64,000 nt of DNA. It comes from Klebsormidium nitens (Eukaryota > Plantae > Klebsormidiophyceae). Made by a program: the position numbers and the translations under genes. Shown one piece after another: positions 30,647 to 59,181 of this stretch. The first letter of the stretch is position 1, and every line of letters begins with the position of its first letter. Under the pieces are notes generated by a model, which ran no database searches, was not told the origin of the DNA, and saw only the letters and a program-made list of their open reading frames with translations. The stretch covers positions 1 through 64,000 of the forward strand of contig DF237008.1 of NCBI GenBank assembly GCA_000708835.1, in the 5' to 3' direction.

Positions 30647-31174
30647 NNNNNNNNNNNNNNNNNNNNNNNNNNNNNNNNNNNNNNNNNNNNNNNNNNNNNN
30701 NNNNNNNNNNNNNNNNNNNNNNNNNNNNNNNNNNNNNNNNNNNNNNNNNNNNNNNNNNNNNNNNNNNNNNNNNNNNNNNNNNNNNNNNNNNNNNNNNNNN
30801 NNNNNNNNNNNNNNNNNNNNNNNNNNNNNNNNNNNNNNNNNNNNNNNNNNNNNNNNNNNNNNNNNNNNNNNNNNNNNNNNNNNNNNNNNNNNNNNNNNNN
30901 NNNNNNNNNNNNNNNNNNNNNNNNNNNNNNNNNNNNNNNNNNNNNNNNNNNNNNNNNNNNNNNNNNNNNNNNNNNNNNNNNNNNNNNNNNNNNNNNNNNN
31001 NNNNNNNNNNNNNNNNNNNNNNNNNNNNNNNNNNNNNNNNNNNNNNNNNNNNNNNNNNNNNNNNNNNNNNNNNNNNNNNNNNNNNNNNNNNNNNNNNNNN
31101 NNNNNNNNNNNNNNNNNNNNNNNNNNNNNNNNNNNNNNNNNNNNNNNNNNNNNNNNNNNNNNNNNNNNNNNNNN
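30647..31174. other. Assembly gap (528 N)
   Basis: Run of N in the sequence. Confidence 0.99.
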
Positions 31175-31275
31175 CTTTATCGGATCGGCGTGACTTTCCG
31201 ATAAGCAAAGTACCGATAAGGACTTATCGAAAAGTTAAACTTTACCGATCCGATAAGAAGCTTATCGGAAAGTTA
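31175..31275. repeat. Cluster of direct and inverted CCGATAAG/CTTATCGG motifs forming short hairpins next to the gap; possible TE/MITE end
   Basis: cgataag-ga-cttatcg (31214-31229), aaagtt-a-aacttt (31231-31243), ccgataag-aag-cttatcgg (31250-31268); 31177-31188 is the reverse complement of 31245-31256. Confidence 0.55.
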
Positions 31276-32607
31276 AAATGCTGCGGGTGCGAATCGCCCC
31301 TCAGTGTTGCCACGCGCGTTAAAGTTGAAGTTGTAACCCTGTCCGAGTGGACGCTTCAGATGCAACTTCAGAATTGACGGACTCGATGAGGGCGGTCGAT
31401 ATTTCATGCGCGAGCCTGAATTTACCTACCATTTCGAGGAGTTGGACTCAGCTGAGTCGGACGAGTATGCGAGTAGCTTACTCGCCAGTATGCGTCATGA
31501 CGCTCTCTCTGCCTACATGCGCTTTCAGACGTGCGCAAGATGTTCACATTTTCAACTGCATATGCCATAGCCGTTGAGTGCATCATTCATGCGCGTCAAC
31601 TCTGCAGAAGTACGTAGTGCAATGATCATCGATTCGTTGGAGGATAAGGCTTGTTGTACGGACACCTGAGTAGCCAAATTCTTATGGTGGAGGTTGAATT
31701 GCAACGACCAGCAGGCCCATCAGGTTGTCAACTGCCATGTGCTCTTGTCAGATGCAAGCGCCGTTCCATCTTTGCTCCATCATGCATCTTCTGCGATTGT
31801 CAATCCAAGAAACTCTCGAGCCCTCAACTTCAAGACCTAGCAGTGGTAAAAAAGCAATAGATCCTGTAGCAGTGTTAGCAGACGTACAGAGACTAGACAG
31901 GGCTCCTTGCATGGTCAGTCAGACCGGCGTAAACGATCTTACCTCTTGGCTACTCAAGTTAGTTAGGTAGCAGCGCGGGCCTACGTCTAACCATGAAAAG
32001 ATAACATACCTATGAGGTCAATCTTTGCATTTGAGAGCGTTGAGCTGTTTCTCACAAGGTATGTGTACAACCTGCAACATCCGGCTGCTAAATACACGTA
32101 TGATCACAGTGTATCACACTCACGTAGCATCTTTTACCAGTCTGCGGCGCACCACCCAAATTGCAAGCACTTGTACTCCTCTTGGGATGAGCTGAAGTGT
32201 CAATGGCACGCCTTTGTTTCGTCCCAGCTCAATGCAAATACCTGAATCATTAGCAAGTACTTGGAGCATTTCAGCTTTGTGGTCTTACCACCCATCATTG
32301 TTTCAGAGGCAACAAGACGGCAACGCCTACGCTGAGATAAACGCAGCGCTCGCTTGTTGGTGCTCAATCAGCTTGATCTCTGCATGAGGGACGTGTAAAG
32401 CCCATGCATCACTCCACCATTTTTCCAATCGCTGTTCTGCAACTAAACTAAACGGAGCTCTTTATTCTGACGGGATAGCAGGAGCTGATCAATTCTGATA
32501 TCTAGCAGGGACCACTTTACCATACCTTGAAGATAAAGTGAATCACATCAGAGCGCAACCTATCCCTCACCTGGCTAGGAACGTGCCTCGAAAGCAGGAC
32601 ACGTGTC

Positions 32608-35600
32608 ATGGCGCCTTCCCCGAGTAACGCTGCGCGTCAGTCTGTCCGGCTCCCTCAACCGCTGCTTGCAGCTCTGCTCATCTACCTCACACTTTCTCAC
32701 GTGAGCTCTGCTTCAGCTGCAGTGGATGAGTGGGATGGTACAGACGATAAGCTGGACGATTATGCGCAGTTCATGGACCTGGACTCGCAGATCACTTACA
32801 ACGCGCATGGTCATCCGGGGATGGTCTTGGAAGACGAGGAGGAGCAGAGCGAGGTCGGGGGACGTCATCGTTACAACGCGATGCACATCGTCGACGGCAA
32901 GGGCAGCCTGCTCCACATCAAGTATGACGTCCGCACGGTGGCAAACTTGGTGAACCTTGCGAACCATGCGGACGTCATCTCTGGCGTGAGGTGAGGAGAG
33001 GAACTGCGGGTAGAGTTAAGTTGGCACTGCCGTTTGCAAGCTGGATGAGAATGTGCAGAGTAAGCGGCAGCAAGCGCAAGCTCTCTCAAGGTCAAGTCAG
33101 GGGTGAGGCCATAAACAGGGGTGATATGTTTACCCTATCTGGAGCTCAAGTCTAGTTGGAGTACCCACTAGTGTGACCTTTCAACGTAAAGGATAAGCTT
33201 CCGACGTTCGCGCATCAAGTTAGTGAGCTCTGTTTTTACAAACCCCCAACAAAAAGCAATCTCTAATCCTGAATTCGTGCAGAATCTGCGTTCCGAATCA
33301 TGCTTGGTGACAGAGCATTGACTGAGTCTCAAGTAGTCCCTCTCTTGCAAAGGCACCTACCAAACGCTGTGAACAAAATCCGCTTCAAGCTGAGTACTTT
33401 TTTTGGATCTGCAAGGCTCCAGCTAAGCTGATGCAGCCACGTCTTGCTCCTAGGTGCTTTCGAAACGAGCTCCACGTGTCCGTAATCGACGGCGCTCCTT
33501 TGCCAACGTGGCCGACGGGCGCGACTCTGGTGGGGGGCCTGGAGTGGAACTGTACGGACGAGGAGGGGGAGCCGGCGCCTTTCTACCGGCGACTGCTCCG
33601 AGTGCTTCCGGACAACGAAAGCAGTGACGTCATCATGGAGACGCACCACCGAGAGATGGTCCACTGCTTCCGTGGGGCCAAGATATCGTTCAAGTCAGTG
33701 CTCGAGACATCTTTCCATGTGGGCTTGTCTTGTCTGAGCCTGCGCTTTGCTTGAGTGGACTGCCAATCCTTGTGATCTCATTTGAAAGCATGCCCAGCTT
33801 GGTTATGTGTTCCCAGCGCCAAAGAAACTCGAGTTCGAAAAGACCTCATGAACGTCATCCTTAGAGCTTTGGCGTGATCTCTGTAACTAGAAAAAGGCAC
33901 GGATGCGCTTCATAAGAGTGCGTGATTGTTTCCCAAAAGGCGAAGCAGTTTTACTTCCCTTTCCAGTCCGGAAATCAGCTTTCTGAGGTCCTGCAAAACA
34001 GGAGAATTCCTTGAAGAGGTTTGCCGTTGTAACGATATCTCAAACCCGTTTTCCAGGTACAGTATGTGGTACTGATGCAAAAGGCAGCCAGAGATTGGAG
34101 AGTTTTGTCAGGACCGAAAACCTTTACATCTGTTTCCGTCGCAGGTATACTCCCTGCAAGGGGTCCCCCGACAGTCCCGGGGACGACTTACGTCATGCGC
34201 GGCGCAAGCTCTTGCAGTTCGGTTTTGTGAAGACCCTCGTCAAGACCGCCGGTCAAGTTGTGGATGCCGGCGTGTCAGGCGTCAAGAAAATGGGTCAGGC
34301 GGTGGTTATCGCCGCTGACGTGGTGGGAAACCTCGCAATTAACGGCCGGTTCGACTGGCACGGCGGCCAGAACTGGGACTTGTTCCAATTCAACTACGAT
34401 AAGGCGACGCAGCGGGCGGTTCTGCAAAACGATGTGTTGTATGCGAAGACGGCAACTCAGAGCAACGGCTTCAATACAAAGGAGTCCGCGCGCGTCACGT
34501 GCGTCAACTGCTATGCAACGCTGGAGGCGGGAGTGAGCGTCGACATCGTGCTGAAGCGGCAAGTGAGTGAAACGGCCACGTCATTCAGATGGGTGACTCA
34601 ACCTCCTTTTCCTGAGTGCCAGTCTTTGATCACCAAAGCAAATTCTCGTCTTCATTCATATAGACTAAGTTAGCAACCAGAGACGTTGTCAACTTCTCGG
34701 AATTGTCAGCTTCAAGCGTCTAAGTTTCGTTGCAAACTTCTACGTGGAAAGTTGAGTTGAGAAAGTCAATGTCATCTTCTCGGCAAGACAGATTGCTTCC
34801 TGGTCTCTCCTAATGTTGGTCTCCGCTTTTCCACAATTGTCCCACTTTCTGGATCCGTACGCTTGTCTGCAGGTTTAGTCGAGCCCGAATAGATACGAAG
34901 GACCATCAATCCAGCACCCACCACCCCAAGCATTAAACTCCCAACCGATTGCAAAGCTGCTGCAGGCTCCCCCTCGTTTCGCACGGCCTTAACAGAGAAA
35001 CCGCGACCCGAACTTTTGAGACCCTAAACGTTGAGATCTCTGCAGGCGTCGCTCGTCCCGGTGTACCTGGACTGGATGAAGGTCGTTGTGGGCGGCGACT
35101 TCAAGTTCAACGCCGACTTCGACGCGCAGTTCAGCTTCTCCGCCTTCCGCAGCAACTGGAGCAAGCCCATCGGCCCGAACCGCGCGTTCAGCACGCTCAC
35201 CATAATGGCAGCCCCGTGCCGCTCGTCATCCTGCCCAGCATCCAGCTGTACGCGCGCGCGAACCTCGCGGCCGCGGTGCGCGGCGGCGCGACCTTCGGGG
35301 TGGACTACCAGCAGCGGCTGCAGTTCGGGCAGGAGTTCCGCGAGGCGTGGGGGGAGTTCCGGCCGGTGCAACCGGAAGCCTTCGCGCGCCTGAACCTGCA
35401 CCCGCCCACGTTGTCTTTCCAAGGCGAGGCAATGATTGAGGGGCTGCTCATTCTGGAAGTGACGCTGAAGCTGTATGACGCGATACCGGTGGTTATCGCG
35501 CCGGCGCCTTATCTGGGGGTCGAGTTTGCGACGTCGCTAACCCGCATCCAGAAGAGCTGCCCGATCTCTTATAGGATCTACTCCGGGCTCAACCTCTCCC

Positions 35601-38600
35601 TGGGGCTCGACAAGTAAGCGCAGATCATTTGCGTCAATGATTCTATAGGCCCAGGGCCCATTTGGCCTACGATTATCAACATTTGAACTTCCCAGCAACA
35701 CAGAAACGGACTTCTCCTTCTAAACGAAGATGGGCTTCGCAGATTTTGACTTGCGTCGTTCAAAGGTCGTGCACCGTGGCAGTTCATGTCGTAAGAAGCA
35801 CATTTTCCCGCACATTCCTGACACAAAACACTGTCCTGAGCGCCCCTGCTGATCCTGTAAGGAGCACAGAACGGTTCTTCTGTATTCTCGGTTCTTCCTT
35901 ACTTTCTCGATCATTGATCCGAGCAAAATGCGTTTCCTAGAAACAGCGGCACAGGAACATGTGGTAGGCACTTCAAGTCTTGACCTCTCTTCGAAGCTCC
36001 TGTAACTTCGACCAACGACAAAAATGAAGCTCAAGGTATGGACCAAGCATTCGAGGCGGCGTCAAATTTTGCACCTCCGGATTTGTGATATTGTATTACA
36101 TGATGCTTGTCAAACGCAGGACTGAAAGCACGTGGAAACCCTTGAAGTACTTATATTCAGAAAGCTTCTTTTACTCTGCAGGCTTGAGATTCCGCTGGGG
36201 AAGGTGAAGGTCAACGTGGGCGGCAGCATTATACCCTTCCGAAAAAGCCTCCGCCTGATCGGCAAATCCTATCTCCCCTGCGCTTATTGCTCCGGCTGCA
36301 TACACACCCTGGGCTCCGACCCTCTATATAAGTGGGTGGCGGGCCCTTGGGGCACGTGCGGCGCCGACAGCGTGTGGAAGCGTGACGTCACGTGCCAGGC
36401 CGACGGACAGCCCAACTTCGCGATGGCGGACGCCCTTTGCAAGGACGCCGGCGCCAAGCCGCCCGCCTCCAGCGCGTGCAGCGTGGCGCCCTCCTGTCCC
36501 GCTACCTGTCAGCCTGCGGACGGCGTTTGCAACGCCGAGTGCAACGTGGCAGCCTGCGGCCACGACGCCGGCGACTGCCGGACGTCCGACCCGTGCCGAG
36601 CCTTTTCGGACTGCCGCACGTGCCTGACGGGCCCGGCCGTCTGCGGCTGGTGCGCGAGCGCCGGTGCGTGCATCCAGTCCGAAGCGGCGTGCGCGCGCGA
36701 CTTTTGGACGGACCGCTGCGCTCCGGAGGAGACGCAGATCGCCTTCAGCCGCCCCTCGTATGCGGACACTTTGCGGGCCGGCCAGAGCTTTGCCGTCCGG
36801 TGGTCTGGAGGGCCTGCGTCCGGAAAAGTGGTCCTGCGCTACCGCTTCGACGACAGCCCGGACGTCTTTTCCGGCTTCGGCATTCCGGCGGAAGGCGTCC
36901 CGAACAGCGGAACGTTCACGTGAGCGATCGACGGGGGCCTCCCCACCAGCCGCGGCTTCGAGCTGCTGCTCGCGTCGGAAAGCGACGCCGGAAACTTTGC
37001 GTTCAGCGACCTCTTCTCCGTATACGGCGCGCTGGATATGAACGGCTACATCTGGAAGCAGGGCGACTACGGCGCGTGTAGGTAGGTGAAATGCAGCTTC
37101 CCAAGGTCCGCCAAAGAGAGACGATTCTGAACCGTCCGATTGACTGCAACAATTTCTGGGCCGTACTCCATTGCGCTGCTCCAACCTTGCCTCCTTTTCG
37201 ACGAAACGGCAGCTAGACACCCCGCAGACAGCCAGCTCGCTGAATCGAAACTCTTGACTAACATCTAGAGACGTTCTCCCGCCGTTCTAATTCCGTCGCG
37301 GTCTGCACGCAGCAAGTCTTGCGGGGGGGGCGTCCGCACGCGGACCACGTTCTGCGCGAACGCCGGAAACGGAACGGCGGTCGACGCGAGCTTCTGCTAC
37401 GCGGCCGCCAAGCCGGCCGCCCCGCCGCTGTCGTGCAACACGCAGGCGTGCGTGCAGTGCCCCAACGTGCCGATATGCCTTCCGGGGAGCGGCTACCAGT
37501 GTACCACGTGCTCCTGTCTTCCGAACGGCGACGGAACGGAGTTTTGCGGTATGTACTACACGGACGTGCGGACCGGGGCGCGGACCCGGACCGGGTGCGA
37601 CACGCGGGGGAACGAATATCAGGAGTGTTGCAGGAAGCAGGGGTGAGAGTTCCTCGCTTTTCTCAGTACTGTTTCAGCCCAACCTGTGTTTGGTTTGCAG
37701 AGGATCGGCCGAGAACGGCTGTTTTCATGTACCGGCTTGCTATGCCCTGAAAATCCGCCTTCTCTGTTGACTCAAATCCTTTTCCCTGCCTTCCACAGGG
37801 AGTATTGGTTGCTAATCGGGCTGACTACCAGACCTGAGGAGTCTCTTGTTATGGGTCAATCAGTCGGGCCTTAATCTTGTTCCAAGACTGGTTACCGCCC
37901 AAGTCTGGTTTCTGGACACATGACCGCTCTCTGACCAGCCCAAAACCGTTCATGGTTACAGCTAAAACTCTTGTGTTCGCGCCTCAGGCTCTACTGCGAG
38001 GACAAGTGTACGGAAAAAGCCCAGTGGGTCGTCGAATTCAGCATGGAATGCAGCAAGCCCTGCGGAGGGGGAGACCAGTACCGGCAGTTCCAGTGCCGGG
38101 GCTGGCTGATGCGGAAGGGGATAAGGCAGGAGGAATATTGCGAAGACGCTTTCTGCGGACGAAGGCCACCGGGAAGCGGTTCGAGTGCAACACCCAGCCG
38201 TGCATGACCTACTCTTGGCAGGTCGGTAATCCACTCGGTGAAGGTTATCAGTTGAATAACCGAGTCGTGATTCATTCCATTTGGATGCGGCTGCTCGTTT
38301 CACGCCTCGCCGCATCCGCTGAGGAACAGGTAAAGTCTGCTTTTGAAATCTAGGAAGTGATTCAAATGAGTGCCCCGAATCGGAAATGAATATTTCTATC
38401 ACTCGTTGTGATAGGACGGTCGTGAAACGGGGCATTCGTAGAAACTCTCAGGCGGTACCAAGGAAAGTTCACAAATGCTCGCAGAAGAACTTCTGTTTTG
38501 TGATCTTAAGAAGAACCCCTCAGCAGTCAAGCTACTTCACTTCCGTGAAGACCCCCCTTATTAAAATCTTCACCAGCTAAACGGAGGCGAGGAGGCGCAA

Positions 38601-41600
38601 AGGTCTAGACGGGCCGGAGCATGCGGACATCATGTTATGTAGAATACTATGCGCTGATCCTTGAACTTCTTGACACCTATACTCGCAACTTCCGGAAGGA
38701 AAAATAGACTACCAGAGGAGCTGATAACGGGATTACGTCGCGCTTCTCTTCTAGGTGGGGGAGTGGCAGAAGTGCAGTCAAGACTGCGGGGGCGGTACGC
38801 ACGTCAGAGACATCGCCTGCAAGGCGTCAGACGGCAACCTCGTTGCGGAGTCCTTCTGTGCCGGTGCTCCAAGACCTGACACCCAAGTAAGGCGGTCCGG
38901 TCCATCTGCTCGTTTTCTAATTTGAGTCCATCAATCTCGGAGTGCGAGATTGTGCAATCCAGCACAGCCCAACACTTTTTCTTGACGGATCGATACAATT
39001 GAGTGGCTCCCTTAGAAACGCACCGCAACGACCGTCGTCTTTTAGCGGATCCGTTCACGAGCCCTTCGCGAGGCCTCTTTACTGGGTTGGGTGTCTCTTC
39101 AGTTCAGACTCTGGATTCATGAACCGACTACACACAGGCGTCTGGTATTCCCATAAGAATACCTTCTTTACCTGTTGTGCAGGAGACGTGCAATACGAGC
39201 CCCTGTTTGAATGTCGACCCCTTTCTCAGTCAACCACCGCCGCTCGACGTCTGGACAGCGGGGCAAACGCACAACGTTTCCTGGGGAGGGGGGATACAGT
39301 ACGGGACCGTTCTGCTGCAAGCCAAACTGCTTGCTTCGTCCCTGTCTGCACAGCAGCTGACTGCAACGGATGAGTGGAACCATGGGTCCAAAATTGGGCT
39401 CCCGATGGTTGCAGTGTCGAATACTGGAAGCTTCGTTGTGAGGATACCTGATGCGGCCCGTTCGGCGCTTGTTTCATTGAGGGTAAGCGCTATGACTTGT
39501 CTTCTGAGCTGCCGAATTATATGATCGCATCTTGAGAACAGCCTGATCGTGAGGCCTGATTGTGTCGCGTTCAATGTGGGTATCCATGCATAATCTGGTG
39601 CTTCGGATCCGTTGGGATCTTTTCTGACTTGTTCTTGGGGAACTGTTTAGAAATGAATCCGTTTCGAGTAAGTCTCCTCAATCTGAGACGTTGAAGTGCC
39701 TAACGGACCGGCAAAAAGTAAGTAAGACGTTGCCCATTCAGTCGACGGCACAGAATCCCATCCTTTTGGCTTGTATTTGAGTCCATAATGATAACGCCTG
39801 CGAGTTCTTTGAATAATTTCTTGAAAGTACGTGTAGTGCTCTGAATCCAGCTCATTTACATTGTCTGTTTCCAGTTACTTTCGACCGATGCCAACGGCAC
39901 GAAGACGGCCACAACAAACGGACCGCTGGTCGTTCGCGGGCTGGTCACCTACACGGTTATCTTAACCGCAGTCTCTCGAGCTCCCGGCCCGCCAGCCAGC
40001 CTGCCCCTCGGAGCGTCCGTTACACTGTACGGCTCGCTCGACTCCTCCGCTTCGTTCTCGGTCGGTGCAACCTCCCCCGGGCAGCTCTCAGTCACCAAAA
40101 TGGTTCAACAACTAGACCTTGGGGCAGTGTCCCAGTGTGCGGTGACGGGGCCAAGCTGGATGGGCTCGGTTCAAGTGTTGGCCGGGCAAGACGGGTTAGT
40201 GCGAACCTTCGGGTTTGATAACCCGCCAACCGGCGCGAATTCCCTTCGCTCCGACTGCGCCCAGATCCAAGACTGCTTCGCCTGCTCTGCCACGGAGGGC
40301 TGCGGCTGGTGCGCTTCAGGTTCCGGTTCCGGTTCCGGTCCGCAGTGTCTCCCGGGCGACGACTTTGGGCCGTACGTGGGGGTCTGCTCGCAGCCGGTTG
40401 AAGCGGCCCTCATAGCGTATGCGTGGGCGGCGAATCCGGGCACGTGCGCTGATCCCTGCCGCCTTTCCGGCGCGCGCACTTGCAGCGACTGCGCGCTCAA
40501 GGCCGGCTGCGGCTGGTGCGAGGCGACCTGCTCCTGCCTTAAGGGCAACGAAACGTCGCCGGAATTCTTCCCCTGCCCCCGTACCCCGAGCCTCCCCCAG
40601 CCGTGGAGCCTGTCTGCGCAGCAGTGCGGCGCGGGCGGCACCTGCGCGGCCGCGGGCGGCCCGAAGGCGCTCGTCGTGGCCGCGCTGCTCCAAACCTCCC
40701 AAACCTTCGCCTTTCTCGATGGGTCGGCTTCCACGCCCTGCGCCACGTGCTACGGCGTCGACTGTGGCCCGCACGGGGAGTGCATTCACACCAGCGACCA
40801 GGCGGTCTGCCAGTGCAAGGCCGGCTACACCGAGCCTAAGTGTGAATTGCCACCCAGTCCCTGCACCGGTTTTGATTCCTCCCAGGGCGTTCGAACCTGT
40901 GCACTGAGCGGCGACTCTAGTTACCTTTTTGTATGCGCCGACGGCAGGACGGGTCTTGACTGCGCACCTCCGACCCTTTCCTCGACGAGTGTGAATACCC
41001 CCCCAGTAAGCCCAAGCGCGAGCCCGGTTCCAAGCTTAAGCGCCGCCCCGAGCGCAAACGCCAGTTCTAGCCGGTCCCCGGTTCCTTCCCCGAGCGCCAG
41101 TCGGAGCCCCGCCCCGAGTCCCAGCCGTAGCCCGCTTGTCTGCTTCAACAACTGCAACGGCCACGGCACGTGCGTCGCCAACAACAAGTGTGCGTGCGCG
41201 GCCGGGTGGGACGGCGGCAACTGCGCGGCGCTCGGGTGGAACTGCTTCTGCGACTGCCCGCAGGACGAGCGCACGTGTCTGAAGACCGCCGGCTGCCGCT
41301 GGTGCATCGACAACAATTACAACAGCGGGTGCATCCCCACGCGCGACGACAACGGCCAGTGCACGCGCGCGCGCCGGCGGCTACTTGACGCGCCCGCGGC
41401 CGCGCCGCGCGAGAGCTGCTTCCTTTGGCAGCAGGCGGCCGGGCCGAACCAACCGGCGGTGCAAAATGCGCTTTCAAGGGTGGCGAACGTGACCGGGCTT
41501 GTACCCGGGAGCTACACCTTCGTGCTGACGTCAACGGATAACGACGGCCGCGCTTCCAACGCGACCATCCAAGTTGGCGCTGCCGCAACTCCCGTTCCGG

Positions 41601-44565
41601 TTCCGTCGTCCACTCCGGTCGCGACCCCTAATTTCGGAACGGAATCCCCCGGTCCAGTCCCAAATCCTCCACAGGCCACAGGCCCTCCCCCTCTGGCCGT
41701 TCCTCCCCCGATTCAAACGTCGCCCCCCCTCCAAAACCCTCCCCCCGTCACAATCGAGATCCCCACCCCAATCTCATTGCCCCCTCCTGCTTCCCCCGCG
41801 AAAATGCCTCCACCGCGGTCCAAGATCCTCCCCCCGTGACACCTCCTCCCCTTGTTTCGATGCCTCCCCCGATCTCACCTCCCCCCGTTTCGATGCCTCC
41901 GCCACCTTCACCTCCCCCAGTTTCGATGCCTCCCCCGAGTTCACTTCCTCCCCCCGTTTCTATGCCTCCCCCAATCTCACCTCCCCCCGTTTCGATGCCT
42001 CCCCCGAGTTCACTCCCCCCCCCGTATCGATGCCTCCCCCGATCTCACCTCCCCCCCTTTCGATGTCTCCCCCAATCTCATTTCCTCCTCCCGTTTGGAT
42101 GCCTCCCCCAACCTCGCTTCCTCCCCCCGCAGCAACTCCAGCCCCTCCCACAACGCCTCCTCCCGCCGCAAATCCTCCCCCTGTTTCGAATCCCACAGGT
42201 GCCACAGTTCCTCCCCCAACCACAACTGCTTCACCACCCAGAGAACCCCCCCCAGCGGCAGTCCCTCCCCCGGCCGAAATTCCGCCTCCCTCTGCTGCAA
42301 ACCCTCCCCCGGCCGCAACTCCTCCCTTTTCAATCCTCCCTCCGCCTGCTACACTCCCTCCTCCGCCTTCATTTCCCCCCCCGGTGGCAACCAGTGCAAG
42401 TCCCAGCCCGGTTGTTAGCCCATCAAACAGCCCGGTTCCTAGTCCTTCAGAGAGCCCGGTCTCGAGCCCCTCCATTTCCTTAAGCCCACTTCCCAGCCCT
42501 TCCCCTAGCCCTTCGCAAAGCCCCTCTTCGAGCCCGACCCCGAGTGCCTCCTCTAGTCCAGCCCCAAGCTCTTCGTCCAGTCTGAGTCCTTCCTCCACTC
42601 TAAAACCAAGCGCTTCACCCAGTTCCGTCCCGAGCCCTTCCGCCAGCGCCTCCGGAAGCCCTCTCCCCAGCCCGTCCGCAAAAGCATCCCCCAGCCTAGT
42701 TCCCGTTCCGTCGCCGAGTTCCGCTGCAAGCCCTTCCGTCTCCCCTACGATTCAGTCCCCCAGCAGCGCTCCTTCTCTGTCACCCCCCGCAATTTCGCCC
42801 TCTCCAAGCCCCCCCGCCGCGGCTGTCGCCGCCACTCTGAACCTTGGCGTCGCGCTGGCAAATCTCGCCGACCCAGAAGCGGTCCAAACCGGGGACATCG
42901 AGCGGTCGCTGGCCGCCGCAAACGGGCTCGACGCGGGCGCCGTTTCGGTCGCCTCCATTCCGTTCAGTGTGGCCCAGTCGTGCGCCATCGGTAACGTCAG
43001 CCCCGGGGAGTGGGCCGACGGGGGCGGCCGCGACGCGTTCGTCCGCGCGATCGCGGCGGAGTCCGGCGTCGATCCGTCTTCCGTTTCCGTCGAGAGCGCC
43101 GCGGAAAGCAGGCGGCGCCGCGGGCTGCTCCAGTCCGCCGGAACCCTCCGGGTGTCCTTCAGCATCCTGTGCGGGGACGGCGCGCAGGCCAAGGCCGTGA
43201 TCCAGTCGGTAACGGGCGCTTTCGACAGCGGGAGCGTTACCTCCGCTCTAGTTGCCCTCGGCCTGGCCCCCACGCAGGTGCAGGCCGCCGACCCGCCGAC
43301 CGTCAGCGCCCACGTGGAGGTCGTCATCAGCGTCACCGTGAACCGCACGGCTGACGTCACCGCCGTCGCGTCGGCGATCTCGCAGTCCGTGTCTTCGGGC
43401 TCGTTTTCGTCGGCTCTGCAAGAGAGGGGTGTCAGCGCAGACACTCTAGTCGTGTCGGTTCCCACATGGTCGATTGTGACATTCCCACCCCCAGCGCCGG
43501 CTGCTTCCCCAACGCCAGTTCACCCCCCCCCTCCCTCGTTCCCGCAATACCCCCCTTATCCTTCAGCCTCCCCTTATCCAAATCCAGCCTCGTTCCCTCC
43601 ACCCCCTAACAGTCCGACAATCCCACCGCCGGAGGTAAAGAAAGGAGGCTGTTTTGCGGCCGACGCAGAAGTGACCTTAGAGGACGGAACGGCAAAGCGG
43701 ATGGCGGACCTTTGCTTGGGAGACCGAGTCTTTGTCATAGACCCACGAGACGGTCGCCTCTTTGTTGAGGAGGTTTATTGGTTCACTCACAAGTCCGATG
43801 AACAGGTGGGGATTAGTTCTCGACGGCTGTCTCCCATTTCGAGCCCACTAAGGTTGAATTCATTTTAGGCTTTGTATTAGACGTCTGTCGGAATGCGTGT
43901 GCAGTTGCCTTTCAGTGCCTTGCCTTATGACGGCCTGTCGATATCACCAGAGCGCCGATACCTCAACGCCGGTCCCAAGACGCTTTGTTTACACTTTCCT
44001 TGGTACAACCTGTTAGATGTGCTTCCTGTCAGAATGCGAATGCGTTCTTCAATCGGTGCCCAAGCGCCGAACGTCGATGGGCCCCTGTGATGCCATCCGG
44101 CCAAGTTGTTGCTCGGACTGTCTTCGAACTTTGCAGGCCACATACGTTCGTCTACAAACCGAGGAGGGAGCCAGCATATCCGGGACTCCGCATCATTACG
44201 TCTTCGCCCACCGCCCCCCGGCTAGCACCGCTGCTTCTGCCCTCAGTTTCGCCAACGCTACTATTGTGACATTCAGTGAGGTCCGAGTAGGGGACCTCGT
44301 TTGGGTGGCCCGGGGATATCCATCCAACGGTCAATCCGCGCTTCTGGCCCAGAGAGTTGCGAACATTACTGAGGTTTCTCTGCCCGGGATGTATAGTCCC
44401 AAAACCTTGAGCGGTACCATTTTGGTCAACCACGTGGCAGCACTGCAGTTCACCGCCGCTCTTCCGAGGGCCATGTGGGCTTTCCACGTGGCAATGCTTC
44501 CCGCTCGGTTCGTCAGGAGCTTTGTGCCTAGGGCGCCGCTAAACTGGGTGTTTCAGCTCCTTTGA
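32608..44565 (+). CDS. Giant secreted mosaic protein (~2,620 aa if repaired): signal peptide, TSP1 x4, LNR, PSI, EGF, PLAT-like, PKD-like, Pro/Ser-Pro-rich, SEA-like, C-terminal Hog (Hint + SRR-like); disrupted as assembled
   Basis: Exons 32608-32990, 33454-33693, 34145-34562, 35046-35613, 36182-37081, 37313-37642, 37988-38221, 38755-38886, 39183-39482, 39875-43805, 44137-44565 (7865 nt; +4 nt = 2623 codons). Motifs: WVAGPWGTCG, WKQGDYGACSKSCGGGVRTR, CSKPCGGGDQYR, WQVGEWQKCSQDCGGG (TSP1); CQPADGVCNAECNVAACGHDAGDC (LNR); C..CL....CGWC (PSI); CNGHGTCVANNKCACAAGWDGGNC (EGF); GLVPGSYTFVLTSTDNDG (PKD-like); GGCFAADAEVTLEDG (Hint). Confidence 0.85.
41580..42830 (+). repeat. Coding low-complexity repeats: PPPVSMPPP(I/S)S units of ~10 aa, then poly-Pro and (SP)n blocks
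   Basis: Repeated cccgtttcgatgcctccccc units at 41845-42110; SPSPSPSQSPSSSP blocks at 42400-42820, typical of algal hydroxyproline-rich wall proteins. Confidence 0.9.
43650..44565 (+). other. Hedgehog-type Hint autoprocessing domain plus SRR-like tail, split by intron 43806-44136
   Basis: G|CF cleavage junction (Cys codon 43650-43652); block A CFAADAEVTLEDGTAKRMADLCLGDRV; block B ISGTPHHYV (TxxH); terminal GMYSPKTLSGTILVNHV, matching Hedgehog GxYAPLTxxGTIVV; tail FHVAMLPARF resembles the SRR HxxxxPxR helix. Confidence 0.88.
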
Positions 44566-45862
44566 GGCTTTTGCGACGACAGCCGACCCTGTGACTACCA
44601 CCGGGCAGCCCTTTGCAGAAGACAATTTTGTTCCGTTCAATGGACGCATCAGGACGTCGACCTTTGCCAGGTCGGTCGTTAGCAGGGGATAGCGGCGTTC
44701 AGATGTCCGTCGCGACAAGCAAGTGGCGAGATCTGGACAGGAACGGACTGCTGAGTGCCGGCACATTCTCACGCCAACATGTCAAGAACCAAACATTCAG
44801 CAGAAACTTCTGAGGCCGTACCCGCTCTGCAGCATCATAGTACGCAGGTGGTACGCAGCATACGAAATAGCTCTGGCAAGTTTGAAGAGGGTCTCAGTTG
44901 ATCTTTACATGCACACATCTGACCACTGATGACTCTCTCTGGTTACCTTGGGCTGAGGTATTATCGCTGAGACTGCTGCGCAGCTTTAACCGTCTGAGTG
45001 CTCATGAAAAGTGCATCTAATGGCGGCATGACCGAATTGGCTGGATCAAAACCTGTCGTCCTTGTCGTCCTAGTCGCCCTATAGTACATCTTACTCACTT
45101 TGGCATAATGTATAGGGCCGACTACGGTACTTGAGCTCCTATACCATACTGCACCATCCGTGATCGACTATTTGATTGGGCCGGTGGCCCGGGGACGCAC
45201 CGAGCGATCGATCTGCGATTTGCATATGAGCTAGGTTGGCTAATCAGACCTGGGCCGGACGGTATACTTCGTTGATCGTGCCATGATGCGACGTATGCAA
45301 CAGAGTACGTACTTTCCAAAAACCTCGATGCACTAAGATCAGTTCGACGCCGACGCGCTTGTATGGTGGCCCTTCATTCATGATATACTCGGTCCGGTTT
45401 GCATATGGCCCATTCTTCCATCGAAACTGTGAAGCTTCGCCAATGACCTACTAGAAGACTAAAGTTGAGCTGACGTGATCCGATGCACAGAAGTAAGTCA
45501 TGGGCAGCGCATGATGCGACCATGCTCATGGGATCAATCGCGATTCAGAATTTTATGTTTGGATGTCGTCGGGTTACCTAAGTCTTCAGGCGCTTCCAGG
45601 TCACCAGTATGCATGTCTAGCCCGGTACATTCGAACATCTGGCCATGGAGTAACGATCCAGAAAGATGTTTCAATGCCCAAAACCCAATAGGCTCCAACC
45701 AGTCCAGAGTTATCCAAAACACGGAATTGTATCTGAGGGTTGCAACTCGACCCAAAAACGCATTGCTGAGTCTCAGGCAATCCCAGAAGCGTGCAGCAGC
45801 AGGACGTAAGTATACGTATAAAGTACTGTACAACTTATGAATGTGTTTCCTCGAAAACCTAT

Positions 45863-49001: not shown

Positions 49002-49380
49002 ATCTGTCTGAACAGCTCGGACTCGGAGGCGGAGTCAAAGCTGCTGCTTTGAGGAAGATGGCTCGGCTGGAAGGACGGTAGGGAGGGAAGCTGGGGAAGC
49101 AAAGCGCAGTGTGGCACCACCCACCCAGAGCAGCTGGAAAGGGAGAGAGTGCAGTGAGTGGTGCATGATTGTGCAGGGCGTCGTGTCAAAGGCCAGGGCG
49201 GTGCAGCAGGGAGGCTAACAAACCCACCATTGATCAAGTAACGCTCCTTTGGTGGTGGCATCCGGCAATTGTTAAAAAGTCGGCCGCCGAGCTCTCGATC
49301 AGACGACTCCGCGGTGGCAGAGCGCTTATGCAGTCCATGTGAACTAGCCGTGTGGGCAAGCAATGCAGTGAGCTCTTGCG

Positions 49381-52300
49381 ATGGCGGCATCCTCTGCATG
49401 CCTGGGGCTGCAGCCCTCCTGCTCTGTGCCAAGGAGTGCCGCACGAGCGGCGTGTAACAATGTGGGGGAGAATTCTGCTTCAGGGTTTTATTCGCCACAC
49501 CCTGCGATCAAGGATCCCCTGTCAGTAGACGTTCACCGGGTCACGCGCCGTTTCTCAAGCCAGGCACGGCTTTGCATGTACAGAAATGATCGATCATCAA
49601 ACGCCCAGAGTTTGAGAATACCAAGACCCCTGCGGAGCTCTCATTTTTGGGGCATGCAAAACAGCCTATCAAGGCCAGCTCAAAACCCGCCACCCGCCCA
49701 TCGCACTCTTGCAATTGCCAATGAAGCGAGCGCCGCAGAAACTCTTCCTCAGGAACGAACCAAGCTGCTCTCTCCCAAGAGCATCACAGTCCCCCTCGGC
49801 GACCGCACCATTACCATCGAGACAGGCCGCATGGGCCGCCAGGCCAACGGTGCGGTCACTGTAACCGACGGCGAGACCGTCTTGTATTGCACGGCCTGCG
49901 CGGACAACCGCCCTTCCGAGCCGGCCGACTTCGCACCTCTCAGCGTCCACTACCAAGAGCGGTTCAGCGCGGCAGGGCGAACCACCGGAGGGTTTATCAA
50001 GCGGGAGGGTCGGCCGAGAGACAACGAGGTTTTGGTGTCAAGGTTGGTCGACAGGCCGCTCCGACCGATGTGCGACAAGGGGTTCAATTACGAGACGCAG
50101 GTGCTGGTGTGGGTGTTGAGTTATGATACGGAGCACATGCCGGAGCCGCTTGCGATCTTGGCGGCGGGCGCGGCGCTCGCGATTTCGGACATTCCGACCA
50201 AAAAGGCGGTGGCCGGGGTCAGGGTGGGGATGAGTGGTGAGGGGTGGTTGTTTCATTCTTGTCAGGAAACTGTTCTTGAGCCAATGTTAGACTTGCGGCC
50301 TTGGGGTATATTTCTTTGATTTTGTATGCTCGCATGACTTCTTCATCAACATCCGTGTTTTGCCCTTTCGGTTGGCACTGACTTTTATCAACTGGTTCTC
50401 ATGTGGTGAAATGGCTTTGATGGCGCCCATTCTGGTGGCAGGAAGTCCCGTATAAGTTGATATGTGGTATTCCCAGAGAAGTTCATTACATATCCCTTAA
50501 GCTTTGGACTTTAAGAGTGCTCCCGCTTTGAAATGGATCCGAACACTCAGTTTGCTGCCCTCTGCAGAGGACGGCGAGTACATAATCAACCCGACGAAAG
50601 CACAATTGGCGATGTCCAAGCTGGATATGCTGGTGGCAGGCACGGCAGATGCGGTGCTCATGATCGAGGTTAGCCAGCAAGGGCATCGCATTTCTGTCCT
50701 TGGAGGATTCTGCAGTCGCTTTGGATTCATGGTCTCCAAAGTGTCGCAGTTGACTGTGGGCTGGTAATCCGAGTCTGGTTTGAGTCGGGGTTTGTCCAAC
50801 AACGTTGCAGACGACGAGATTTAGTTGAGTTGGCTTCTGGAGTCAGACCTGAGATTGTACGTAGCAGCTCAAAGAGGACACTGTTGCACTCTTGTAGTTG
50901 TCCCACGTAATCTTGATAGGCCCTTTGAAAAAAGTTCGTTGTGCTATCAACATTCTCTCTTGCCATCAAGTCATATGCTTATTAGAGCTCCTCGCTTTGA
51001 TTTCGAGAAGTGTATCTCTATGTCCAGGGTTACTGCGACTGCCTCACCGAAGAGCAGACCTTGGCAGCGGTGAAAGCAGGCCAGGTGCGTTGCGTTGTAC
51101 ATGGCCTTTCACGCGACTTTGCTGTGGCTTTGTTGGCCATGCCTGCATGTTGCTTGCACCAGTCTCAAGGACGTGTCACCTCATGAAGCATTTTTGCTTC
51201 CTTCGTAGCAAGTCAGACGAGGGCTTTGCAACCAAAACTGTCTCCAAGAATATAATCATTGAGGCTCGCACTGCTCCGAAATGAGAACATGTTGTGCGGG
51301 GTGTGTAACGCGCAAGTCGGATCAGTAGGGTGCTTTGGCGACTCAAGTAGCGTCTGGAAAATTGTCACTTGTGAGGGGCGGAAGTGTGGCTCTATCTTGT
51401 GACTTGGTTTCGTGCTTCGCGCGTAGGACGCGTTGAGCGGGGTCTGCAATGCGATTGAGGAGTGGGCTAAGGAGGTGGGAAAGCCCAAAATGTGGGACAA
51501 GGTGGGGCGACCACCAGAGGGGCTGGAGGAGATGCTCGAGGTGAGGCCCCTGCCGCTCGGTTCTAATCCCTGGAGTGGAGAACCATGTTTGCATTGGTTG
51601 CGTGCTCATGTTTGTCACTAATGTTACAATGTCAATGGGAAAAGCAGGCGAAAGAGCCAGCCGGTTTGACCTCATGAGCGACCGCTCTCTCTGAAGCCCC
51701 GTCAAAGGCCTGAATTGCTGGGTCAAGTATTTCCCTTGAATCCCTTGATCATTATTCAACCTGCTCTGGGGCTCGTTTGTGACGTGTAGTACTAGTAACT
51801 CTGGCGGGGAAGCTTTTCTAATCCTTCTAGGCTTCTCTGAAAAACACTTACTACAGGCTGCATCGAGGGTCCAGTCGGCTCTCAGGTTCCGTCCCTTTGC
51901 CGGGCACGTTAAGAACTTTCCTTGTGTACTTGACATCAAGCAAAATGGTGCGCACGCAGAGACTGGTGGGCGCTGATCTGGACAAGGTGCTGCGCATTTC
52001 CAAGAAGCAAGAGCGGGGGGCGCGTGTAGCGGAGATCGGGGAAAGGGCCCTGTCGGTGTTGACTGAGAAAGGCCGAGCCGAACTGGTGAGCCGGAGTTCG
52101 TCCGCCCGCTGTTCTGCACGGCCTCTTGGGATGAGTGTTGCGAAGGGGGTGCATAGGCAAGGAGGCTTGTTATCAAAGAAAGCGGGGTATGCCAGCGGTG
52201 TGCATCTTCCTTCATTACGCATTTGTTAGGCTTCCTTACGTGGCAGGCCGTCTGCTTCGTCCCTGTTCTACCGGTTGCCTTTTCCGGCCCCTCCGTTTCT

Positions 52301-55300
52301 TGCCCAATCTTTTGGGACCTTTTTCACCCCGTCCGTTCTGTCTCAATCCTTTCGAACCCATGCGAGAACCTTCAAGCAAGATCTAGCGTTTCCTTTAAGC
52401 CCTCTGTGGCAATCTTTTCTGCTCGTCTTCCTTTGGTGCCAAGACTGCTGCCTGAGCAGCGTTCCGTGTTGAACCCTCGGAGCCCCTCTGATGGATCCTT
52501 GCTGTTTGCCTTCTCTCATGTTTCGAAAGGTGCTCCAAATGTTTCTCATCTTCTCGAACCTTGCCACTTGAGCTGGCCCAGTCAATGCCGAATAGAAGAT
52601 CTGAGCCGTTCAATTTTCGGGTGTGCTGATCGAATCTCTGTTACCACCTCCCATCCATCTCAAACAGGCCGTTGCGTCTCGAAAGCGTGCTGTTGCAAAC
52701 TATCACGGCGGGACATCTCTTGAATTCCGCATATCGACTCATCTGTCAATATTTCTCGCATACCCCCCTCGTTCCTTGGAACACGCAATTGTGTTTCGCA
52801 AACACTCACATCGGACATCTTCATAGTCGCATAAGCGATGCTCTCAACCGAACCCCGCACCGCGCAGAAGTCCGCAGAGAGCGACAGCGACGACGAGGAC
52901 ATCTACCCCGGCGAGGATGACGTCATCGACCTGTCGGCTGACGAGAGCGAGGAGCCGGTGCTGCCGGACGCGGTGGTCGCCGGACGGCGGCCGAAGGTGT
53001 ACGATCCGGACGCCGTGAAGCAGGCGTTCAAGGAGCTGAACTCGCGGGTGCTGCGGCGGATCGTGGTGCAGGAGAACCGGCGGAGCGACGGGCGCAGTAC
53101 GACGGTGAGTATGTCTCCGGTCCTGACAATAACCCATCTTTGCCGTTTATTCTTGGTTTCGTTTGGTGACCCCAAATCGCGGGTGCTGCGGCGGATTGTG
53201 GTCCAGGACGACCGGCGGAGCGGCGGACGGAGTACGACTGTGAGAATCATACGGCCATCGTTGCTCACTTTCGCTTTGCCAAAGCGGGACTTTCTTGGGG
53301 CCCTCGCCAGTCAGTCCCCTTTTGCAGGAGGTACGGTCTATTGAGTGCTCTGCCAAACTGTTGCCGCGCATCCACGGCAGCGCACTCTTCCGCTGGCGCT
53401 GACCCCTCCCTTTATGCTCTCTCAAGTCAACCTTTTGCTTCCAAGGGCGTCAGCATACGGGAGTCAGTGTGACGCCCTTGGACGACCTTTCCCATCCACT
53501 TTCAGATCAAATCTGCATTGTTTCCACTCTGCAGGAGATATGCCCCAATTGAGTGCTCGCGAACCTGTTGCCGCGTGTCCATGGAAGCGCAGGTTTTGGC
53601 GGCGCTGGCTCCCTCTTTTGCTTGCCCTCTTCAGCTTATCTCTTCGCAGGACGTTTTCGGCGCCCTGCCTAAGCCTGATCGGTACCCAAATGTTTTAGTG
53701 ACTTTCAATCTGCAGGAGGTACGGCCCATCCGCGAACCTGTTACCGCGCATCCAAGCCGCGCACTTTTCCACATGCGCTGACTCCCTTTCTTCATGCTCT
53801 TACAAGCCGTGCTTTTGCTCCGCAAAGGGAGTCAATGTAGGGAGTCAGCGTGACTCCTTCGACCGACCTTTCGGATTGATTCTAGAGCAAGATCGTTCTT
53901 CTCTCCACTCTGCAGGAGGTACGGCCCATTGAGTGCTCCGCAAACCTGTTGCCTCGGGTTCACGGCAGCGCGCTGTTCACGCGCGGGGAGACGCAGGCGC
54001 TGGCGGTGGTGACGATTGGCGGCGAGGACATGGCGCAGAAGCAGGACAACATGCAGGGGCAGCAGGCGGACCGCTTCTACCTCCAGGTAAGCTCGGACAA
54101 ACAGTTTGATTCACAGAGTGTTTTGAAGCTCTGGTCTTAGGATTCTACTTGTCAGAGGGTTGTATGGGTTACGGCTGTTGAGGGGGACTTGGCGCAGAAG
54201 CAGGACAACATGCAGGGTGGGCAGGCACGACCGCTTCTACCTCCAAGGCAGCCAGGAGAACCAGTTGTAATCCTAGGGCGTTTCGACTTTCTTGGATCGG
54301 ATTTTTTATGTCCAGTTGTTCGTGCGGTTAAGAGTTTTGGAAGGACATGGCGCGATAGCACAACATGCAGGGGCAGCAGGCCGACCGCTTCTACATTTGG
54401 GTTAGCAGAAGTTTCGAAATGTCAAAACGCCCGAAACCTGAAAAGCCACAGAGCTATATTCAAGGCTAAGGACTGTTAACTGGAGGAGTCAGCATTTCCG
54501 AATTTCGGATGTCTTGATACCAGGTAGCATCCTCGTCGTATTGTAAACAGACGTGCTGGACGATTTTGATGCCACCTTCGGCCAAGCCAGAGCCGAGGAG
54601 GACTTTGAGCCGTTTTTCTGCCGATTTGTCAATTGGGCGCGAACCCCACTCATTCGGTAGGCCGATCGGCTCGCCCCTGTCTTCGCAAGGGAATCTTGAT
54701 TGCTGGAGCTTATCGTCCAGCACCCCCCTCACCCACTTATATGCATTTGCTCTCCGACTTGATTTCTGTCGACTAGCCTTACTGCTACTTAACGCATGTT
54801 TCCGATCCCTTCTCCAGTACAACTTTCCCCCCTCCTCCGTTGGCGAGACCAAGCGAGTCGGCGCCCCGGGCCGGCGCGAGATCGGCCACGGCATGCTCGC
54901 GCAGCGGTCGCTAGAACCGGTCCTTCCCCCCCAGCTCAGCTTCCCCTATACGATGCGCGTTGAGAGCACCATCACCGAAAGTAACGGGTCGTCCAGGTGA
55001 GAGGGTCCTTTTGTTCTTAAGTAGGGCTCTTTCGGAAATTTTCACTTTCGAAACGATCTTTTATACCTTCCCTACGGCATGTGAAAGATCGACAACGTTC
55101 TTGTGGGGCGTCAGTAGCCTACTTGAGGAGTGTCATGCTTGCGTTTTCCAGCTGCGAAAGGAGTTGTTTTTCTTGTATACCAAGTTCGATCGAGAAAACG
55201 TGCAAAGCTACCCTCAACTTTAACCCTAACCCTCGTCATCCTCACCAGGATGGCATGGCTTCCATTCGTGGCGGCTGCCTCGCACTCCTGGGCGCAAGCG

Positions 55301-58300: not shown

Positions 58301-59181
58301 AAAACGAGAACAGGTCAAAAACGGTTTGTTGCATGTCGTGGAAATTTGGCACGCAGCATTGGCTCGTCAGGATTCTTCCTGACGAAAGAAGCTCTCCTGA
58401 AAGGTCTCGAGCCGCCCATAATTTGCAGACTGGTTACAAGATAAAGGCCGCGCTTGAACAACGAGCTCCTGGTTAAAAGATGCATACCTGGCAATACTAT
58501 TGGGCTGTAAAAGCTCACCCTGCCGGGCGTGGAATCCACCTCTCTCCTCGTCAACGGAATCTTGTTGACCCTATTACTGCAACCGAATCTCTTGGCGCTC
58601 CGACTAAGAATCTGACAGCATCTTGAAGCTGACTCGGACAGTTTTACTTTATGCTGACATCAAAGACGCTTAAGCTGACTTGGAAGTCGACGCCGCAGGT
58701 TGGCGACACCCTAGACGTGAAGCTCCTAGAGATCAACGAGCGGGGCCAGCTGCGGTTGAGTCACCGGGCGCTTTTGGTAGAGAACGAAAAGGGGGCAAGC
58801 GCCGGGGCAGGTCCTCCTGGGGGCGGCACGGGTAGCGAGGCGGCGAAGCCTGCGTTCAAGGCCGTTTGGCAAAGACCGGGGAACTCAACTGGGGGAGAAA
58901 ATGCGTCGGGAGCAAGTCAGGTGAGCTTGGCGATGCATGCGTTACAGTGCGGTGAAATGCAATTTATAGTAGGACTGTTTCGAAATGGGTGTGCATGCGA
59001 AGAAGGAAGATACAGTTCCTGGTTTCTTTCAGGTTCGCCGAACCTGTGCAACGAAGTATCGCGTGAGTTTAACGTTCCTGACCACCGAATCACTGGCTTC
59101 CTTTTGCAGGGGTCTTTTCAATCCGCCCCTCGAAACCCCGTTGCCACGTCACCAACAAGCAAAGCCGGCAAGCAAGATTGA
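49381..59181 (+). CDS. PNP: Chloroplast polyribonucleotide nucleotidyltransferase (PNPase), 14 exons, ~947 aa
   Basis: Exons 49381-50236, 50568-50668, 51028-51084, 51427-51540, 51960-52085, 52868-53104, 53916-54086, 54818-54996, 55449-55668, 56166-56324, 56734-56936, 57878-58004, 58699-58920, last exon 59110-59181 (alternative 59033-59191). Motifs [80 protein letters not shown] GxxG loop, S1 domain. Transit peptide and an acidic insertion typical of the plastid isoform. Confidence 0.96.
53174..53915 (+). repeat. PNPase intron 6: one copy of the exon-6 3' end with donor, then three ~180-207-bp tandem copies of the intron end plus exon-7 5' end
   Basis: Echo acceptors tgcag|gag end at 53327, 53534 and 53715; the real one ends at 53915. 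Both intronic and exonic parts of the unit are repeated. Confidence 0.9.
54186..54410 (+). repeat. PNPase intron 7: two degenerate copies of the exon-7 3' end
   Basis: ggcgcagaagcaggacaacatgcaggg...gaccgcttctacctcca at ~54190-54246 and a second copy at ~54345-54393. Confidence 0.88.
55255..55308 (+). repeat. PNPase intron 8: degenerate copy of the exon-9 5' end
   Basis: Copy translates [18 protein letters not shown] versus exon [18 protein letters not shown]. Confidence 0.88.
56502..57140 (+). repeat. Echoes flanking PNPase exon 11: two 5'-end copies upstream (56502-56549, 56613-56660) and one 3'-end copy with donor downstream (57063-57135)
   Basis: [16 protein letters not shown] versus [16 protein letters not shown]; [22 protein letters not shown]|gtacgg versus [22 protein letters not shown]|gtacgg. 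Confidence 0.9.

Follow-up and report, generated by a model that had tools for sequence, protein, structure and literature searches.

We analyzed a stretch of 64,000 nucleotides of the green alga Klebsormidium nitens (assembly GCA_000708835.1, contig DF237008.1, positions 1 to 64,000), hereafter called the window, and in it the locus at 32608-44565 on the + strand. This region is a chain of long stop-free pieces with a changing frame, as expected for an intron-bearing eukaryotic gene. A preliminary description of the same DNA had read it as one giant protein joining animal-type adhesion modules to a C-terminal Hedgehog-type autoprocessing (Hog) domain. Our results show that the locus is one conserved, weakly transcribed gene with 11 exons, and that its intact form would encode a secreted surface or wall glycoprotein of about 2,620 residues, a mosaic that ends in a Hog domain and has no transmembrane anchor. 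The deposited sequence carries five lesions in the frame, and on balance we lean toward a gene that was recently disabled, at least some of these lesions being real.

The gene model was built with an exon-chaining script and then corrected by hand. It comprises 11 exons and 10 introns of 231-568 nt, all of them GT..AG, and encodes a protein of 2,622 residues (with X placed at the breaks) that has a signal peptide and 105 cysteines. A scan of the whole model protein found no transmembrane-like segment, as the preliminary description had stated.

A relative's copy of the gene, with 75-89% DNA identity, is found in two contigs of one public run (Logan SRR23617307), L003 (11.9 kb) and L001, which overlap by 27 bases in Ser-Pro repeats. 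The ten main aligned blocks of L003 correspond to exons 1-10, L001 spans the last part of exon 10 and exon 11, and no alignment is obtained for the introns in between. Against this relative, the ratio of nonsynonymous to synonymous substitution rates (dN/dS) is 0.20 overall at a dS of 0.43 and lies between 0.05 and 0.37 per exon, with all exons included. A further contig, L002, comes from a metagenome, is 93% identical, and carries the open reading frame (ORF) P0124. Bases 1-125 of L002 do not align to the window, though P0124 runs through them; the contig may be a low-coverage chimera or may use another exon junction upstream.

Several earlier elements of the model were discarded. The first output of the script had skipped real exons and bridged the frame breaks with “introns” of 53-85 nt, which are far shorter than the true ones, also remove conserved cysteines or repeat units, and fall at places where L003 is in a single frame. 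The exon 9 donor, initially set at 39438, was replaced by the one at 39483 (AGG|GTAAGC), which fits the L003 block, and comparison with L003 moved the borders of exons 2 and 3 to 33693 and 34145.

All exons lie on the + strand. Exon 1 (32608-32990) opens with the start ATG and the predicted signal peptide (32608-32718, ...SSASA|AV), in agreement with the preliminary description; its L003 block spans 32558-33005, and its 128-residue ORF is kept. The conserved N-terminal region continues through exon 2 (33454-33693; block 33444-33705), whose donor AA|GTCAG is kept in both taxa, exon 3 (34145-34562; block 34141-34621), which gave no Pfam match and whose acceptor CGCAG|G is kept, and exon 4 (35046-35613; block 35037-35621), where dN/dS is 0.10-0.18 and where the first lesion lies. 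Exon 5 (36182-37081) aligns to L003 with 0 gaps (block 36177-37087). Exon 6 (37313-37642; block 37302-37710) is followed by exon 7 (37988-38221), which is in a single frame in L003, exon 8 (38755-38886), and exon 9 (39183-39482; block 39178-39488). By far the largest is exon 10 (39875-43805), assigned from Pfam, the fold search, and both the L003 and L001 blocks. It is separated by intron 10 (43806-44136, phase 0, GTGGGG..TTGCAG) from exon 11 (44137-44565), which ends with the stop codon. DNA similarity to the relative also continues past two exon borders for about 60-70 nt, beyond the donor in intron 3 (34563-34621) and ahead of the acceptor in intron 7 (38682-38754); these conserved stretches may be splicing signals or alternative exon ends.

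Domains were assigned with Pfam on the stop-free pieces, and gathering cut-offs are given beside the scores. The intact protein begins with the signal peptide and about 530 beta-rich residues, for which neither Pfam nor an ESM Atlas feature search returned a match. The preliminary description had listed four ADAMTS-style TSP1 repeats and a Notch-type LNR module, and these assignments stand. TSP1_ADAMTS (PF19030; cut-off 23.8) matches four times, with scores of 27.6, 30.6, and 44 bits and, just under the cut-off, 23.3 bits for the broken third copy. TSP1-1 lies at 36333-36488 in exon 5. TSP1-2 (30.6 bits) starts in exon 5 at 37047 and runs through the first part of exon 6 to about 37451, where a Cys-rich stretch takes over (37452-37642). 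TSP1-3 occupies 38019-38209 of exon 7, its 23.3 bits falling on the first part, and TSP1-4 starts in exon 7, has its body in exon 8 (44 bits), and ends in exon 9 with CNTSPC. The LNR module (PF00066) at 36471-36581 scores 28.3 bits against a cut-off of 21.2, and 29 bits in L003.

Of the PSI domains (PF01437; cut-off 23.1), reported as approximately four, one copy, PSI-1 in exon 5 (36594-36722), is firm at 23.7 bits, two PSI-like segments at 40253-40339 and 40472-40555 are weak (16.8 and 14.6 bits), and a fourth, at 41228-41377, was recognized by eye only. Following PSI-1 and TSP1-4, respectively, are two Kre9/KNH Ig-like domains that the preliminary description had overlooked. KNH domain 1 (36735-37034, exon 5) matches PF10342 in both relatives, P0124 scoring 30 bits and the ORF of L003 36.3 bits (cut-off 24.6); the copy in the window is cut by a TGA codon. 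KNH-like domain 2 (39243-39482) occupies the rest of exon 9, was recognized by eye only, and gave no Pfam match.

Exon 10 starts with a candidate PLAT-like beta-sandwich at 39944-40219. No Pfam match to PLAT was obtained; an AlphaFold2 (AF2) model of 39875-40252 (predicted local distance difference test, pLDDT, 55) gave top Foldseek matches that were all PLAT-bearing lipoxygenases or lipases, with a template-modeling score of 0.47 and E values of 0.015-0.05, so that the proposed fold is weakly supported. The two EGF modules named earlier are both visible, at 40745-40831 and 41141-41224, although their scores fall just below the cut-offs: one copy reaches 21.5 bits with EGF_2 (cut-off 22.1) and 21.7 with EGF_Teneurin (24.3), and the other 20.3 with Pvs28-EGF (26). 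They stand between the third and fourth PSI or PSI-like copies, and the PKD domain that had been suspected next in order (41420-41575) is confirmed as a K319L-type domain (PF22352, 36.9 bits; cut-off 27).

The PKD domain is followed by the Pro and Ser-Pro rod anticipated in the preliminary description, which spans 41594-42815 and comprises 415 residues with 39% Pro and 22% Ser. A tandem repeat at 41836-42100, with a unit of 33-36 nt, encodes PPPVSMPPP(I/S)S; one of the lesions lies at this array and another inside it. Downstream of the rod lies a conserved alpha/beta region of 215 residues (42816-43475) with a dN/dS of 0.14. This region had been called SEA-like, a claim that our data do not support: Pfam gave no match of any kind, the AF2 model reached a pLDDT of 45, and Foldseek returned only weak, generic alpha/beta matches with no SEA domain among them, the model being too poor to exclude the fold. 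An ESM Atlas feature search of the region was uninformative. In the middle of the region, both taxa have the identical segment ESRRRRGLL (43104-43130), L001 sharing the RRRR motif (43110-43121) in the alignment; the motif lies ahead of the Hint cleavage site and is a possible dibasic site for processing of the kexin or furin type. A Pro-rich linker, still in exon 10, connects the alpha/beta region to the Hint domain.

The Hog module comprises 194 residues, namely the Hint domain and a short helical tail. Hint (PF01079; cut-off 29.7) is matched in two halves, profile positions 8-63 at 43650-43805 in exon 10 with 43.8 bits and positions 64-181 in exon 11 with 59.6 bits, the match stopping at position 181 of 213. 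Profile searches place the Hint, three of the TSP1 repeats, and the LNR module of the preliminary description above the Pfam cut-offs. At E < 0.01, the Protein Data Bank (PDB) matches of both Hint halves are Hedgehog proteins only. The predicted autocleavage site G-G|C (43644-43652) follows residue 2428 of the model protein, within KKGG|CFAAD (43638-43664), and its Cys aligns with Cys1 of the Hedgehog C-terminal domain in 6TYY, 1AT0, and 7E2I. The sequence TPHH (44185-44196) aligns with TPAH of Drosophila Hedgehog. The G|CF start and TxxH motif reported earlier are therefore both present. Intron 10 splits the domain at the same codon in both taxa: L001 similarity ends at 43807 and restarts at 44129, L001 has a GT..AG intron of its own (244 nt), and the Pfam profile runs on from 63 to 64 across it. 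The dN/dS of Hint is 0.19.

Two residues important in Hedgehog are replaced. The position of Asp46 is taken by His (43788-43790, FTHKS), which aligns with the His of 6TYY and with the Asp of Sonic Hedgehog (Shh); the 6TYY sequence has His where wild-type Drosophila Hedgehog, as given in PMC12054796, has Asp46. Since a D46H mutant of Hedgehog still autoprocesses in cells (PMC12054796), His may be a functional swap. The position of Cys143 (motif J), which is needed for Hedgehog autoprocessing and forms a branched thioester (PMC12054796), is taken by Gln (44446-44448; VAALQF versus VAASCY in Hedgehog), also in relative P0001. In 86 related matches that contain the motif, this position holds Thr in 52, Cys in 12, and Gln in 2. 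Given Gln for Cys143 and His for Asp46, any cleavage chemistry would differ from that of Hedgehog. After Hint comes a hydrophobic tail of 37 residues (44452-44562), also found in the relative, which ends in ...WVFQLL before the stop codon. No C-extein or C-terminal splice residues of an intein or bacterial intein-like (BIL) domain are present, the protein ending 37 residues after Hint, and no piece gave a Pfam match to the Hedge signaling domain.

The preliminary description spoke of one reading frame. Beyond the 10 introns, this frame contains four one-base frameshifts and an in-frame TGA, which had been tacitly repaired. Lesion B1 (about 35208-35215, exon 4) is one missing base, GGCAGCCCC compared with GGCGGGCCCC in L003, which shifts the frame by -1; L003 reads TLTIMAGPVPLII in one frame. 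B2 is the TGA at 36921-36923, inside KNH domain 1, where L002 and L003 have TGG (Trp) and P0124 reads GMFTWAIDGG across the site. B3 (about 38154-38158, TSP1-3) has 13 bases fewer than L003 in the alignment, a net -1, which can be read as 12 in-frame bases and one G. B4 is a run of 6 C at 41830-41835 where 7 would hold the frame (KILPP|VTPPP); the old frame meets a TGA, the frame changes from f1 to f0, and the PPPVSMPPP repeat goes on across the site, with L003 in one frame. B5 is a run of 9 C at 42015-42023 where 10 would hold the frame, recognized from a change of frame from f0 to f2, beyond which PPPVSMPPP units again go on, and from the repeat spacing, one unit being 35 nt instead of 36.

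The TGG to TGA change at 36918-36926 also turns ACGTGGGCG into ACGTGAGCG, so that a consensus-like GTGAG splice donor arises at the stop. A 63-nt intron at this TGA was considered and rejected, as both relatives have Trp there in an open frame and splicing would remove strands required by the KNH domain.

Translation begun at the signal peptide would stop in exon 4, and Hint is out of frame with the signal peptide. Because four one-base breaks and one stop cut the frame, production of the full-length protein has probably ceased. The proposed architecture, a secreted mosaic of wall or adhesion type with a terminal Hog domain and no transmembrane anchor, holds for the ancestral gene and the relative, whereas the deposited sequence, with five lesions between signal peptide and Hint, cannot be translated in frame from one to the other. 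L003 is in frame at all five lesion sites and has three breaks of its own at other sites (within L003:4300-4900 and L003:10600-11060): exon 4 lacks one base near a (CG)n tract, and exon 10 lacks one base in a C run and, between PSI-like 4 and PKD, a further 13 bases. The relative's copy looks likewise disabled.

RNA evidence comes from one study, in which four small runs contain short contigs identical to the window along about 3.2 kb. These contigs are biased toward exons and extend into the 3′ untranslated region. Exon 8 is covered by contigs of runs X3 and X4, and a contig also covers exon 9. In exon 10 contigs lie at 40351-40977, 42368-42789, 43076-43332, and 43637-43892, and exon 11 is covered over 44134-44733. 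The contig of run X3 is spliced from 38886 to 39183, proving that RNA is the source and confirming intron 8 (38887-39182, GT..AG), the sole intron confirmed in this way. Two contigs from two runs, 43637-43892 and 43776-43971, run from exon 10 into the Hint intron unspliced, which could represent intron retention, nascent RNA, or DNA carry-over. Because no contig joins 43805 to 44137, splicing of Hint rests on the comparison with the relative and not on RNA.

We next weighed whether the lesions belong to the genome or to the assembly. All five are derived, L003 being in frame at B1, B3, B4, and B5 and both L003 and L002 reading TGG at B2. B2 is a substitution and not a homopolymer miscall, TGG to TGA being no typical 454 error, and B3 lies in a run of only two G beside an indel of 12-13 bases. 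The RNA contigs differ from the window at 0 positions in about 3.2 kb, where about 2 differences would be expected if the five lesions reflected the general error rate of the assembly. Finally, L003, from a separate data set, has genuine frame-breaking indels, the 13-base deletion among them. These observations support the view that the gene was disabled; because dN/dS is low and no other stops are present, any inactivation must have been recent.

Other observations weigh against this reading. Several of them would fit an intact, working gene, in which all five would be draft errors and a precursor of about 2,620 residues would be made, would cleave itself at GG|C, and would perhaps become linked to lipid or wall through the Hint thioester. 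Assemblies of 454 reads with Newbler are prone to homopolymer miscalls. This genome is a Newbler assembly of 454 and Illumina reads (PMC4052687). The C runs at B4 (6 C) and B5 (9 C) are typical places for such miscalls, and a stretch of 4 C can accommodate B1. The four indels share one direction, each lacking a single base. Besides B2, there is no stop in about 2,600 codons, purifying selection acts in every exon with no relaxation of dN/dS, and the gene is transcribed. The contigs, mapped to 38801-44800, cover none of the five sites, B1-B3 lying upstream of that interval. No RNA contig shows the Hint intron other than unspliced, and we know of no biochemistry for any plant-lineage Hog protein. 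An independent sequence of this strain was found neither by exact ORF look-up nor by a word-index search, which returned only two fragments, both from relatives, nor by metagenome scans. Against an intact gene stand B2, B3, the error-free RNA contigs, and the breaks in the relative; we regard it as a serious though less likely alternative and continue to favor recent disablement.

A much less probable explanation is that the lesions are real and full-length protein is nevertheless made, through transcriptional or -1 ribosomal slippage on C runs, splicing from the new GTGAG donor, or an intact second allele unseen in the haploid assembly. This would fit the finding that every single-base indel, four in the window and two in L003, is the loss of a base, that the 13-base deletion of L003 shifts the frame likewise, that the C runs at B1, B4, and B5 belong to Pro codons, that the TGA creates CAC|GTGAGC, and that selection is strong in both taxa despite the breaks. 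However, B3, the TGA, and the 13-base deletion of L003 have no slippery site, the sole in-frame acceptor after the new donor would give the 63-nt intron, far under 231-568 nt, and delete core strands of the KNH domain, and no RNA evidence was found for slippage, new-donor splicing, or a second allele. Equally far from what we expect, yet conceivable because strong purifying selection persists despite one-base-missing breaks in the DNA of two taxa, is that frame restoration is routine in the alga, through slippage during transcription or on the ribosome or through other recoding, and that the full precursor cleaves itself by a Hint chemistry needing neither Asp46 nor Cys143.

It is also highly improbable that the locus is not one gene, with the adhesion modules and the Hint exon as separate transcription units or the Hint exon as an unused relic beside a shorter gene ending in the Pro-rich region: no spliced read links the two Hint exons, contigs that enter the intron meet a stop after 20 codons, and apart from ORF fragments no database protein contains this Hint half, but the first half shares an exon with the rod and the alpha/beta region, the profile continues across a phase-0 GT..AG intron kept at the same place in both taxa, Hint is under purifying selection, and the unspliced contigs physically join exon 10 to the intron. 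The search with the second Hint half covered 1.84 billion representative proteins and gave 123 matches, none from this genome and none longer than 788 residues.

Were the intact precursor made, the motifs present suggest how it might be cleaved and anchored. In the endoplasmic reticulum (ER), Hint would form a thioester at Gly2428-Cys2429 by an N-to-S acyl shift, with TPHH assisting. A nucleophile, positioned by the His in place of Asp46, would then attack this first thioester directly; because the residue at the Cys143 position is Gln, a branched intermediate of the Cys143 type would not be possible. Cleavage would free an ectoprotein of 2,428 residues whose C-terminal Gly, at the foot of the Pro-rich stalk, would be free or esterified, for example to a sterol, and the hydrophobic tail could hold a lipid. 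The sterol-recognition region of Hedgehog, about 65 residues, is longer than the 37-residue tail found here. Hedgehog-style sterol ligation, raised in the preliminary description, is therefore an analogy only, given the Gln and His at the two positions.

In 2008, Buerglin (PMC2362128) described Hog proteins of moss, Selaginella, red algae, and protists. Our protein resembles them in being a secreted precursor with a lineage-specific N terminus and a C-terminal Hedgehog-type Hint domain and, like those of moss and red algae, in the replacement of the motif-J cysteine. Unlike them, it has Gln at this position, which cannot form an ester. The known proteins are short, most with N termini lacking a known domain, whereas here about 2,430 residues of named adhesion modules and an extensin-like rod precede the Hog module. 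Among ten related Hog proteins of 443-658 residues, we found an EGF module in one and a trypsin domain in one, and TSP1, LNR, PSI, or PKD in none. A further parallel is Hoglet of the choanoflagellate Monosiga ovata (PMC2362128), which likewise has a non-Hedge N terminus of carbohydrate or matrix type and a long low-complexity stalk directly upstream of Hog. Its stalk, however, is Thr-rich and joined to a cellulose-binding domain, whereas the present protein, far larger and from another lineage, combines a Pro and Ser-Pro stalk with TSP1, LNR, PSI, EGF, PKD, and KNH modules. With the C-terminal domain of animal Hedgehog (1AT0, 6TYY, 7E2I), it shares the Pfam family, the G|CF start, TxxH, GTI(V/L)VN, and a hydrophobic helical tail; it differs in lacking a Hedge domain, in the His for Asp46 and Gln for Cys143, and in a tail of about 37 residues. 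The giant adhesion-mosaic architecture is thus a novel form within the already known non-animal Hog proteins. A literature search yielded no publication that deals with Hog or TSP1 proteins of Klebsormidium.

To our knowledge, non-animal Hog domains have so far been known only in short proteins, mostly with anonymous N termini, none of them tested biochemically. TSP1, LNR, PSI, EGF, PKD, and PLAT-like modules are usually considered animal-type, and here a plant lineage has combined such modules in a giant mosaic of matrix or adhesion type, borne on an extensin-like stalk and joined to a Hog domain. Should the protein be made, Hint chemistry would be one candidate means by which this alga, closely related to land plants, tethers a surface glycoprotein or sets it free, and the protein's natural His for Asp46 and Gln for Cys143 would test current models of Hedgehog autoprocessing. 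Whether the gene is dead or alive, its annotation and any “repaired” protein model depend on the five lesions.

Outside the gene, a run of N marks a scaffold gap at about 30650-31180, some 1.4 kb upstream of the start codon, and accounts for an apparent low-GC bin at 30-32 kb. Downstream, at 49372-59178 on the + strand, stop-free pieces (e.g. 56166-56576 and 58633-59178) resemble a multi-exon polynucleotide phosphorylase (PNPase) gene with an S1 domain.

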